Origin: Heteronotia binoei
Lineage: Eukaryota
Reading direction: 5' to 3'
Assembly: GCF_032191835.1 (NCBI RefSeq)
Contig: NC_083237.1
Coordinates: 17,422,001 to 17,486,000, forward strand
DNA: 64,000 nt
Made by a program: the position numbers and the translations under genes. Under the pieces are notes generated by a model, which saw only the letters and a list, made by a program, of their open reading frames with translations, was not told the DNA's origin and did no database searches. This document shows positions 26,713 through 49,830 of the stretch, piece by piece (positions within the stretch are counted from its first letter, which is position 1; every line of letters begins with the position of its first letter).

Positions 26713-28792
26713 GTCCAATTTAGAAGCAGCTCTTGACAGACCAGTCCGAGCTGCTTCTAATCTCGCGTCGCCCTGGTTCTTAGCCAGTTTGGTGTAGTGG
26801 TTAAGTGCGTGGACTCTTACCTGGGAGAACCGGGTTTGATTCCCCACTCCTCCACTTACACCTGCTGGAATGGCCCTGCAGGAGTTGTCCTTGAATGGGC
26901 AGATTCTGTGAAAGCCCTCTCACCCCCACCCACCTCACAAGGTGTCTGTTGTGGGGGAAGAAAATAAAGGAGATTGTAAACCGCTCTGAGCCTCTGATTC
27001 AGAGAGAAGGGCAGGGTATAAACCTGCGGTTTTCTTCTTCTTATGTTCAGAAATCCAGATATTGTGTAATGACACTCCTCAGCTTCTTTCCACCAACATC
27101 ATGAAACTAGAAAACAAATGAACATCTTAATCCCACTTAAAGCTGTGATGACCAATGTTGTAAGTGCCAGAAGCTGATCCAGCTGCTCTTCTTGTCACAG
27201 TGGTGGTAGGAAGTCCAGTTGAATCACAGCTGACATAGAGTAACCTCATAGGGTTTTCCAGGGCTTTTTTTTTTTTTGCAGCAGGAGCTCCTTTGCTTAT
27301 TAGGCCACATACCCTGGGTTTTAACCATTTACGTTTGCTACACAAAAGCTGCGGCACTTCCTGTAACTCCGGCGCAGATGGTGGGAAATCCGACAGACGC
27401 TGCAGAGGGAACAGGATTGTGACTGCGAGGTAAGCTGTGTGCGAAAACGGTCCAATTCTTTTCAAAGCCAGGATTCCTCTGGGAAACATAGCCATACAGT
27501 TCTCAAAATGTTTCTGCCTTATTCATGGGTAATTCATTTCATTCACTTATTGGACCATTAAATCCAACATTAGTGAAATCCCAGTTGTTACATTTTAATT
27601 CATGGCTGGAGAACTGACTTGGGAAGGTTCCTTCTCAATTTTATATCCTATCTAAAACAGACCAACACAATCAGAGAGAATGACACATCCTCTCCAGCAG
27701 AGGGCAGCACACACAAACATATCTATTATACTTTATGCTCAGTGAAAGGTGTTACTATTTTACAGTGACAGACTAGCATGGCTAACTCCTTTGGATCCAG
27801 GGCCTTTTCTGAGCAGGAACGCAGTTTCGGCTGGCTTGGCATCAGGGGGTGTGGCCTAATGTGCAAATGAGTTCCTGCTGAGCTTTTTCTGCAAAAATGC
27901 CCTGTGTGAAACAATGTTGCTGTTGCAAACTCCTTCATTTCCAGCAGCAGTGCATAGGGCAGTCTCCATGCGGAAACACCCTACAACAGCTACAGGAATT
28001 ATCTATACATTTAAGCTAGTTTCATGGACAGCGCCTGTCCCAACACCTGATTCAATCCATTTTTGTGAAGCTGCCACCTGATTCAATGCCATTTTTTGTG
28101 AAACTTCCCCAGTCTTTCAGAAAAGAATAGTCCAATGGTTAACTGGTTTGCTAACTGGCGTACACTCAGGACATGTATATCTGGCTGCTGCACAATCAAC
28201 ACAACACTTTGAGAGAGAGAGACAGAGAGACAGACAGAGACAGAGAATTCAACATTTCATTGCTGTTTTGTGTGATTGGTCCTATATCCTCTTTGATTTG
28301 CTCAGCCAGAGACTCCTAGGGGTTAAGATGCCATCATAAAGTCAAAGGCAAAGCTATTGGATAGGCTCTTTGCAGTGCCCAGGGGTCACGTGACAGGACT
28401 CATTTCCTCTTTTGCTCTCCCTTTCATTTCCTATAGTGAAACCGAGGACTTTGCTCTGAGCCAACCAGCGTGAGGAACTCCAGAAATTCCAGTGGAGTCA
28501 TTCTCTTGACCTGAGCCAGCCAGGAAGGCAGGAGGAGACCGGAGTCAAGATTCCTGGGCTCCTGGACTGGAAGATTCCTGGGCTCCTGGACTGGAAATAC
28601 GGTTGGCTGAGCTGTCAACTATGAATTAGAGATTCCTGAGCCACAAGACTTGTTGGAGAAGAAGATCAGGTCTGATGAGCTGTCAGTGGAGGGAGCATAA
28701 AGCAGATTCCTGACTCCTGTCGCTTCTGCATCCTGCTCAGCAGAACTTTTTTATTTTTTGTAGCAGGAACTCTTTTGCATATTTCGGCCACA
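26713..28792. other. Duplicated module X2, ending in the left half of the split MITE
   Basis: Colinear with X1; ends ...GCATATTTCGGCCACA immediately before the minisatellite. Confidence 0.92.
26783..27040 (+). mobile_element. Squam3-like SINE
   Basis: Paralogue of 18362-18637 with a small internal deletion. Confidence 0.8.
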
Positions 28793-28977
28793 TATAATAA
28801 GGCTTGCTGAAGCATTAGTTATAGTAAGGCTTGCTGAAGTATTAGTTATGGTAAGGCTTGCTGAAGCATTAGATATAATAAGGCTTGCTGAAGCATTAGT
28901 TATGGTAAGGCTTGCTAAAGTATTAGTTATGGTAAGGCTTGCTGAATTATTAGTTATGGTAAGCCTTGCTGAAGTAT
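28793..28977. repeat. 27-bp minisatellite, about 7 units, at the left end of Y(B)
   Basis: Same unit as 13887-14604 and 49387-49700. Confidence 0.95.
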
Positions 28978-29104
28978 AGATTAAGTACTATTGTTTGGAG
29001 TATCTTGCTAGGACTGCCCGCCACACAGACGTTCTACTAACTATTAAGGTTTTATTTGTACTATTATATCTCCTCCTAATTGCTGGTGTTCCATTTGTAT
29101 TGGT

Positions 29105-29124
29105 AATAAAACTTGTTTATTAAA
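29105..29124 (+). terminator. Candidate polyadenylation signals (AATAAA, ATTAAA) after the left minisatellite
   Basis: AATAAA at 29105-29110 and ATTAAA at 29119-29124 in AT-rich, 3'-UTR-like sequence followed by a T/G-rich tract. Confidence 0.4.
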
Positions 29125-29280
29125 AAGAACATAGACTTGGGTTTATTCTTGAGGCGCTGTATCCATGGGTCTTCCAGAGAGCCCACCGCCCAAGAGAGAC
29201 GCTGGGCAGATTTGCTCCTACCATCACTGAGTGCCCATCCGAGGAAGAGATGAAGGTCTCCATAGAGAAAGACTTAAAAA

Positions 29281-48397: not shown

Positions 48398-48831
48398 TAG
48401 GGTTGCCAAGTCCAATTCAAGAAATATATGGGGACTTTGGGGGTGGAGCCAGGAGACCTTGGGGGTGGAGCCAGGAGGCATTGGGGGCGGAGCCAGGAGC
48501 AAGGGTGTGACAAGCATAATTGAACTCCAAGGGAGTTCTGGTCATCACATGTAAAGGGACAGCACACCTTTTTAAACGCTTTCCTTCCATAGGAAATAAT
48601 GAAAGCTAGGGGCACCTTATTTTGGGGCTCATAGAATTGGACCTCCTGGTGCAATCGTTTTGAAACTTGGGGGGTATTTTGAGGAGAGGCACTAGATGCT
48701 ATTCTGAAAATGTGGTGCCTCTAACGCAAAAAACAGCCCCCCCAGAGCCCCCGATATATCCAGATCAATTCTCCATTATACCCTATGAGAATCGATCTCC
48801 ACATAGGGAATAATGAAGTGCCTAGCAGACA
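48398..48831. mobile_element. Family-2 hAT element with its right end deleted
   Basis: Paralogue of 12470-13176; copy B lacks the equivalent of 12903-13338. Confidence 0.85.
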
Positions 48832-49386
48832 TGCCTTTGCAGTCCCAGAGTCCATAGAGTATGAGCATCAAAGTGTGACCTGTAAGGGACAAAGCAATGG
48901 GCAAAACCAAAACCAAAGCAGGCCACTGCTGCAGTCAGCACAGCCCCCCCCCCCCCCGCCTTCAAGCAGCTGCTTGCTAGAACTCCAGTTCCAAGAATCC
49001 CTCCGTTCAGAGCCCTGGCTGTGAGAATGACTTCTCTTCTTCCTGCAGAGTCCGGCAGTGGCCAAGAGAGGAGAGCCAACCCCGTCGGCTCCCAGCTGCC
49101 CGTCCGCCGCACCCACGTCCCGCCGGAGCGTCACCAACTTTTTTCAGTGGGTCCGCAACGTCTTTAGCCGGTCTTCCCTAAGGAGTCAACAGCGCAGCCC
49201 AGCTGCAAGAGGCGAAAGGCAGCGCAAAAATATCGGCACGCGGCTGCGAGGCTGGATCAGGAAGCACCTGGGGCGAGTGCACCCCGACAACTGCTGAGGC
49301 GCAGACAGGTCACGAGCGCTCAAACTTTGTGAACGAGGACTTCCTGCTGCTTTTAAACTGTTTACTCATCATGGTTACTGCTAGTA

Positions 49387-49700
49387 TTAGATATAATAAG
49401 GCTTTGTGAAGCATTAGTTATGGTAAGGCTTGCTGAAGCATGAGTTATAGTAAGGCTTGCTGAAGCATTAGATATAATAAGGCTTGCTGAAGCATTAGTT
49501 ATAGTAAGGCTTGCTGAAGTATTAGTTATGGTAAGGCTTGCTGAAGCATTAGATATAATAAGGCTTGCTGAAGTATTAGTTATAGTAAGGCTTGCTGAAG
49601 CATTAGTTATAGTAAGGCTTGCTGAAGTATTAGTTATAGTAAGGCTTGCTGAAGCATTACTTATAGTAAGGCTTGCTGAAGTATTAGTTATGGTAAGGCT
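49387..49700. repeat. 27-bp minisatellite, about 11-12 units, at the right end of Y(B)
   Basis: Same unit, and the same exit junction GGTAAGGCT-GAATCCCACCACTG as at 14604. Confidence 0.95.
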
Positions 49701-49830
49701 GAATCCCACCACTGCTCACACCCCTGTTGTAGCCAATTCTCCTGGAGCTTTCAGTAAGCCCTGTAAAAAGAGCCCTGTAAGAGCCCTGTAAGCTCTTGGA
49801 GATGTAGCATAATGTGTAAAGGAGTTCCAC

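Follow-up and report, generated by a model that had tools for sequence, protein, structure and literature searches.

In the account of Durkin 2012 given in PMC12235870, the KIT alleles Cs29 and Cs6 that underlie colour-sidedness in cattle arose by serial translocation through circular intermediates, from a donor that is single-copy and colinear. Human insertional duplications attributed to extrachromosomal circular DNA (eccDNA) carry a comparable dot-plot signature, in which the donor order abcdefghij appears as efghijabcd at the recipient site; Takahashi & Innan 2020 (PMC7188851) regard donors with a tandem duplication as the typical source of false positives for this signature and exclude such cases. 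Also related are ordinary interchromosomal segmental duplications and the Pack-type terminal inverted repeat (TIR) elements such as Pack-MULE and Pack-hAT, which hold host gene DNA between both ends of a small TIR element. Here we describe a locus of the gecko Heteronotia binoei that has features of each of these. In a 64-kb window (NC_083237.1, positions 17,422,001 to 17,486,000; "the window" hereafter means this whole stretch), a block that we call Y, carrying an uncharacterised gene that we call G, interrupts a miniature inverted-repeat transposable element (MITE) within a tandem array of genes for the drug-metabolising arylamine N-acetyltransferase (NAT). Comparison with two other geckos indicates that Y entered the NAT locus, that it looks like one period of a head-to-tail G array, and that it was then spread together with its new neighbour.

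The resemblance to Cs29 is that a gene-bearing block was copied to another chromosome, is circularly permuted and has non-homologous end joints. In cattle, however, the single-copy, colinear donor makes the permutation demand a circle, whereas the gecko donor family forms a head-to-tail array in a relative. The gecko block is also much smaller (15 kb versus ~0.5 Mb), and it was then amplified in tandem with the recipient gene. The signature of the human eccDNA insertions is likewise reproduced, but the gecko case falls in the excluded tandem class unless a single-copy H. binoei donor exists.

The window is free of undetermined bases and its block order was read from self-comparison. Two further stretches of the same NAT array (L001 and L012; chromosome record CM063339.1) were compared with it. 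From left to right the window consists of one Y copy, two NAT units, a second Y copy, a third NAT unit and a unique flank:

1-14604, + strand: block Y1, which starts ~565 bp before the window, holds the whole gene G and is 98.0-98.6% identical to Y2
14619-21454, + strand: NAT unit a, which the unit map resolves into the right MITE part, a short interspersed nuclear element (SINE), NAT-a, region N and the left MITE part
21455-28792, + strand: NAT unit b, ending with region N and the left MITE part
28793-49700, + strand: block Y2, 20.9 kb, which by comparison with the outgroup order corresponds to one full permuted G-unit period
49715-54343, + strand: NAT unit c, with the right MITE part, a SINE and NAT-c, the last unit of the array
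54344-64000, + strand: D, the flank downstream of NAT that we take as ancestral, colinear with Gekko kuhli L009 14030-22841 and with Paroedura picta L008

Together with L001 and L012, this extends to a wider layout of NAT, Y, three NAT units, Y, NAT, Y1, units a and b, Y2, unit c and D. At least four Y copies thus lie inside 120 kb of array, and the number of NAT units that follow a Y varies, the other Y copies being followed by one or three.

As the preliminary description of this DNA had noted, a MITE that is whole at the boundary between units a and b is split around Y2, and Y2 starts and ends in the same 27-bp minisatellite. Alignment with five copies of the MITE family (at 16693, 18854, 25124, 52559 and 55789) bears out the first point and Tandem Repeats Finder (TRF), run on both sides, the second:

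21402-21571, + strand: intact palindromic MITE of ~170 bp at the a/b boundary, the unbroken target by alignment with the five family copies
28741-28792, + strand: left part of the split MITE, ending in GGCCACA, with the MITE-to-minisatellite junction at 28792/28793
starting at 14619 and at 49715/49717, + strand: right MITE part, placed by alignment with the MITE family copies
28793-28974, + strand: left-end minisatellite of Y2 (TRF array at 28798-28974, 27-bp unit, 6.6 units)
28975-29256, + strand: distal 3' untranslated region (UTR) and downstream flank of G, with AATAAA at 29105-29110
49383-49700, + strand: right-end minisatellite of Y2 (TRF array at 49386-49700, 11.7 units), 86 bp after the G stop codon
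13887-14604, + strand: right-end minisatellite of Y1 (TRF, 27-bp unit, 26.6 units)
14605-14618 and 49701-49714, + strand: 14-nt filler GAATCCCACCACTG at the minisatellite-to-MITE junction, found by sequence match

The MITE lies ~0.6 kb upstream of the NAT start codon, and the break falls ~45 bp inside its left arm. Intact copies also stand between NAT units outside the window (L001 29434, L012 941 and L012 9376). The short filler had been taken to mark the right junction, and it does so in identical form, junction included, in three diverged copies (two in the window and one in L001); the left junction is likewise found in three copies (window, L001 and L012). Because they recur in diverged copies, we regard the junctions as inherited features and not as mis-assemblies. 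A mis-joining of repeats during assembly would be easiest to imagine in a nested tandem array with minisatellites such as this one, where the short reads give no clear count of junction-spanning molecules. Each junction type is nevertheless present in three copies, with substitutions around identical breakpoints, and one Logan contig bridges the left junction of the L001 type, so that we consider an assembly artefact the least credible of the explanations weighed here.

The left joint exists in two forms. In the window GGCCACA is followed by TATAATAAGG, and in both L001 and L012 GGCCACACAC is followed by GTAAGG. The overlap between the left and right MITE parts had been put at 2-4 bp; this holds for the window copy, but in L001 and L012 the left part overlaps the right half by 7 bp (CACACAC). 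Since the extra CAC in these two copies continues the MITE, the older state was probably a 7-bp target overlap, as judged from the sequences of the three copies, and exchange inside the repeat array probably altered the left junction of the window at a later time. The two minisatellite ends share 8 nt (GTAAGGCT) in the 7-bp state, an overlap that carries little weight in a sequence with a 27-bp period. The left joint in the L001 and L012 form, two of the three copies, is without microhomology. These observations agree with the earlier proposal that the two junctions are the reciprocal products of one joining between a MITE and a minisatellite.

As an observation on the filler itself, its best match is 12 of 14 positions at 16859-16872, beside a same-family MITE copy 2.2 kb downstream in the NAT unit. 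Other sites matching at 12 of 14 positions are 52910-52923, L001 1141 and L012 13246. A search for the source of the filler thus gave a match that is within chance (0.76 hits expected per window); it could be a templated patch.

Which of the two partners moved is a separate question, and here the preliminary description had left two directions: Y into the NAT locus, or a piece made of the coding exon X and region N into the 3' UTR of G. To orient the event we used the NAT loci of Gekko kuhli (L009) and Paroedura picta (L008), both of which hold a single NAT copy. Unit c and D are colinear with L009 and L008, unbroken across the boundary at 54343. G. kuhli has no element at the MITE site (L009 9763-9816). 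From the end of N (last 650 bp) to the start of X there are 53 bp in G. kuhli and 477 bp in the window, the surplus being the MITE and the SINE. The outgroup G loci of both species are without NAT and their NAT loci are without G. The two families are also on separate chromosome records, with G on CM122939.1 and NAT on CM122952.1 in G. kuhli, and G on CM110980.1/CM110982.1 and NAT on CM110991.1 in P. picta; that the donor family lies on a different chromosome is seen in the outgroups only. Because c and D are colinear with the outgroups, the MITE site is empty and G is elsewhere there, these comparisons lead us to conclude that Y entered the NAT locus. An outgroup with Y already in place between both MITE halves had been named as an observation that would refute the earlier reading, and what we find instead are G-free outgroup NAT loci and, in G. 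kuhli, an empty MITE site.

The opposite direction, in which a circle or tandem piece of X-N entered the minisatellite in the 3' UTR of G at the G locus, draws on the symmetry of the geometry in the window and on the fact that units a and b together start and end at the same MITE position. Outgroup colinearity speaks against it: unit c continues unbroken into D, the sequence that flanks NAT in two outgroups, and after unit c we find no N, no left MITE part and no G tail. The G loci and NAT loci of the outgroups each lack the other gene as well, and we reject this direction, provided that the outgroup NAT loci are orthologous. The stretch 14619-28792 had also been described as exactly two turns of an X-N circle. 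Its start and end do fall at the same MITE position, but units a and b are two ordinary tandem NAT units of 6836 and 7338 bp that have diverged and differ by kilobase-size indels. Rolling-circle copying was ruled out as their origin, with other Y copies being followed by one or three units.

We next consider what Y represents at its source. Gene G was located by searching the exon open reading frames (ORFs) individually, and by a full-length tblastn search with the database protein P0001 as the query:

39332-49297, + strand: gene G (LOC132583222-like) in Y2 (tblastn; ORFs open)
39332-39427, 43085-43270 and 43403-43585 (exon 2 doubled), 45936-46133, 47481-47831 and 49046-49297, + strand: G exons in Y2
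3712-3807, 7444-7626, 10004-10201, 11553-11903 and 13545-13796, + strand: G exons in Y1 (tblastn; open in frame)

All five exons are present and open in both Y1 and Y2. A profile-free protein search with one exon ORF identified G as XP_060110873.1 (LOC132583222), an uncharacterised, acidic protein of 388 amino acids (aa), and this same search matched relatives in geckos only. A Pfam scan of the G exons gave no family above threshold.

In Y2 the order is 3' UTR tail, spacer, G exons 1-5 and start of the 3' UTR, that is, the tail forms the left end of the block and the last exon lies near its right end. In G. kuhli the last exon, a single minisatellite proto-unit and the poly(A) tail are contiguous. 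The sequence straight after the last G exon in both G. kuhli and P. picta is homologous to the left end of Y (29084-29256 onward), with the tail flank in G. kuhli at L005 14637-14825, L006 13262-13450 and L007 23846-24034. This contiguity upholds the view that the AATAAA after the left array and the last exon before the right array belong to one gene whose order is permuted. By these alignments the ends of Y are the two halves of one 3' UTR, and the order of Y is a circular permutation of that of a single G gene. Between the two 3' UTR flanks of G. kuhli lies one 22-nt stretch, of which 17 positions match the 27-bp unit, and from this single proto-unit it follows that the minisatellite grew in place in the 3' UTR of G. 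By the time of the break it had become an array. Among the Y copies the right-end array measures 11.7, 26.6 and ~82 units (the last at L001 20504-22711). The left-end array is constant at 6.6 units, as is its variant pattern, both its length and its unit pattern being shared with L001.

A permuted order can also be read along an array. Two G. kuhli stretches (L006 and L007; CM122939.1, 11.26-11.37 Mb) together carry over a dozen copies and fragments of G, all on one strand. One 9.6-kb unit there, L007 14279-23846, runs from tail through spacer, upstream region and exons to the next tail, which is the cyclic order of Y. Compared with this array, Y looks like one period, running from one 3' UTR to the next. 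By analogy with G. kuhli, the donor in H. binoei was probably a head-to-tail G array as well. The geometry of the two junctions had been presented as the signature of a circular intermediate; this part does not stand, since head-to-tail arrays of the G. kuhli kind give the cyclic order of Y naturally, and a tandem donor had been named beforehand as grounds for giving up that claim.

The location of G varies among geckos. Heteronotia has it in the NAT cluster, Paroedura twice in the Ig-GPR33 interval, and Gekko in arrays on another chromosome. In P. picta the two Ig-GPR33 positions are paralogous loci 12 Mb apart (L002 8075-17461), and the orthologous interval measures ~2 kb in H. binoei (L010 11091-13166) and in G. 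kuhli (L011 13558-15953). The family is thus at non-orthologous places in the three geckos.

The copies of Y record what happened after the insertion. By Kimura two-parameter (K2P) distance, Y1 is 0.014-0.020 away from Y2 and 0.001-0.005 from the copy in L001. Both junctions are shared by these diverged copies, which argues for a single event followed by copying; on the sequence evidence Y inserted once, and unequal crossing-over multiplied it thereafter. Across the window, L001 and L012 we count four copies of Y, each of which sits inside the NAT array, was co-amplified with NAT units and has not transposed independently. This bears on a further explanation, a Pack-type capture in which the MITE took up Y during transposase-linked gap repair, so that MITE-Y-MITE would be a giant TIR element. 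Like Pack-type elements, Y is host gene DNA flanked by both ends of one MITE. Unlike them, it shows no loss of the element's interior, where 7 bp are duplicated instead, it has no independently transposed copies, and it is a 15-kb insert with a whole gene. With the break well inside the left arm and not at a terminus, and with every Y in the window, L001 and L012 copied along with NAT units, we regard such a capture as very unlikely.

Y2, which adjoins the last NAT copy, looks like the oldest form of the block from its sequence content. It is 5.7 kb longer than Y1 through a full Ty3/Gypsy element that it has kept and a further 0.8-kb insert:

32375-38295, + strand: decayed Ty3/Gypsy element in Y2, with long terminal repeats (LTRs) at 32375-32841 and 37830-38295 and Pfam matches to protease, reverse transcriptase, RNase H and an integrase zinc-finger

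Where Y2 has the full element, Y1 (2992-3451) and L001 have a solo LTR. The LTR pair is 93.6% identical (K2P 0.068), and since this divergence exceeds that between Y copies, the Gypsy insertion predates the amplification.

Short reads from an independent sample of the same species label (three raw-read runs plus contigs, over 27300-29339) show both flanks of the left junction at multi-copy depth, with the tail at ~1.7 times the depth of N. The higher tail depth is a weak hint of extra G tails elsewhere in the genome.

Overall, the locus resembles an ordinary interchromosomal segmental duplication in that the empty target persists in paralogous units as well as in outgroups, the joints are blunt or filled, the junctions are shared and identity is mosaic. 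It differs in that both partners broke in recognisable repeats, the MITE and the 3' UTR minisatellite, making the event readable to the base. With an insert-free outgroup locus, a preserved target and shared breakpoints, the case can be assigned on sequence grounds to interchromosomal insertional duplication followed by tandem amplification through nonallelic homologous recombination.

On these data, the course of events was as follows. The ancestral locus was a single NAT gene consisting of region N, coding exon X and flank D. Later, in the lineage of Heteronotia, a palindromic MITE landed upstream of the NAT start codon and a SINE followed it, and the resulting N-MITE-X unit was duplicated in tandem. 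One period of the G unit then inserted once into a MITE, extending from the minisatellite of one 3' UTR through the tail, the spacer and a whole G to the same minisatellite one 3' UTR further on. The persistence of intact MITEs places this insertion after the MITE and SINE had landed and after at least one duplication of the NAT unit. Both joints resemble end joining, blunt on the left, with the 14-nt filler on the right and with a 7-bp target duplication. Unequal crossing-over between NAT copies afterwards spread Y with one to three NAT units.

As to how the period travelled, it may have left the G array as a one-period extrachromosomal circle, formed by recombination between neighbouring units. 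A single cut within the minisatellite would have linearised this circle, and a staggered break in the MITE would have taken it up. Such a circle is our leading candidate for the vehicle, with a probability that we would put at roughly 0.45. It is favoured because Y is exactly one period, because both of its ends are in one array and because a single break suffices. The permuted order does not prove it, because the donor was probably tandem. The junction features are equally those expected of a linear fragment, in which two breaks in the minisatellites of adjacent G units gave a one-period piece, released or copied, that was end-joined into a broken MITE with no circle involved: the blunt joint, the filler and the 7-bp overlap would be the same, the head-to-tail array of G. 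kuhli makes such a fragment colinear with Y, and the minisatellite is unstable, as its array lengths attest. For this route two breaks would have to occur at once, and each would have to hit an array of 0.3-2 kb in a period of 15 kb, where one break suffices for a circle; we consider it unlikely.

A copying mechanism is a further candidate. In template switching (fork stalling and template switching, FoSTeS, or microhomology-mediated break-induced replication, MMBIR) a fork would have collapsed in the MITE, one G period would have been copied from minisatellite to minisatellite, and an extra switch would have left the filler. Both break sites, a palindromic MITE and a minisatellite, are hard to replicate, and the filler has its 12-of-14 match beside a same-family MITE copy. 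That match is within chance, however, the template would be on another chromosome, and the left joint is without microhomology. We prefer the circle to template switching because the joints are blunt or filled and do not have the microhomology expected, and copying of this kind appears improbable to us.

Several points weigh against this explanation. The donor was not found in H. binoei, in which the single annotated G protein lies in the NAT array itself, and the Ig-GPR33 interval, the home of G in P. picta, is without G in H. binoei (L010), as it also is in G. kuhli (L011). The tandem state of the donor is taken from another genus, from an assembly whose proteins are labelled 'UNVERIFIED_CONTAM'. 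No circle-specific feature is present in the data: Y positions 1258-4893 (counted from the left end, with 28793 as position 1; window 30050-39953 in Y2 and 693-4328 in Y1) are unalignable to any outgroup, and a tail-to-head joint would be undetectable there. The product of a circle would equally arise if the fragile minisatellites of two adjacent units both broke, or if the polymerase stalled at them. Finally, pile-ups over the MITE and SINE dominate the short reads, and junction-spanning reads are not directly shown.

Beyond the junctions, the Y copies differ in ways that affect G. A 318-bp tandem duplication (43007-43639, compared with Y1 7366-7680) doubles exon 2 in Y2, in L001 and in the RefSeq protein XP_060110873.1, and is not in Y1; with exon 2 doubled in some copies, the G copies differ in the length of the protein that they encode. 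At this duplication, the identity of Y1 to L001 drops from 99.9% to 99.5%. A G intron holds a tandem array of a 109-bp unit (5.3 units, with a higher-order period of 217 bp) at 8262-8840 and 44212-44788; the SINE-like sequence of which it is built also occurs, dispersed, in the outgroup loci. Before the last exon, Y carries a dispersed repeat of ~450 bp (12470-12914 and 48398-48832) that is not part of the junctions and recurs inverted, at 84-88% identity, in NAT unit b (24084-24527) and in D (58503-58932).

The NAT genes of the window are as follows:

~15306-16089, + strand: NAT-a coding remnant (Pfam PF00797), in which a 29-bp deletion near codon 38 shifts the frame
22050-22862, + strand: NAT-b coding sequence, 270 aa, intact
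50323-51135, + strand: NAT-c coding sequence, 270 aa, intact

All three NAT ORFs match PF00797 over its full length at 181-228 bits (cut-off 22.8), and the motifs PFGSL and RDGFC can be read in all NAT copies. Over its first 500 bp, unit a matches unit c at 99% identity and unit b at 90%, a mosaic that fits the spread of Y by unequal crossing-over. Just downstream of NAT, in D, an intronless ORF at 56059-57102 is without a Pfam family and is found in three geckos. It shares 86% protein identity with G. kuhli L009 15852-16835, and its paralogues number two or three per locus (L008 12392-13401, 4293-5271 and 15189-16232; L009 15852-16835 and 22592-23308).

The arrangement has possible consequences for both genes. 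Each G borne on a Y would have lost its poly(A) tail and would point into the NAT copy 0.6 kb downstream, and the NAT copy downstream of a Y would be cut off from its own upstream region N. We suggest, tentatively, that the locus may reflect germline reintegration of a one-period circle in a wild vertebrate, a G unit that habitually relocates in geckos, and a G that has been rewired to read into NAT. For the study of such events more generally, the locus advises caution, as circular permutation is diagnostic of an eccDNA intermediate only with a single-copy donor. It is at the same time an unusually legible natural example of a whole gene moved between chromosomes and then co-amplified with its new neighbour, legible because the target can still be seen empty in neighbouring units and in outgroups and because the linear order of the donor can be recovered from a relative. 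As a result, H. binoei has at least eight distinct NAT protein genes in one cluster, and copies of a gene for an uncharacterised acidic protein stand between them.

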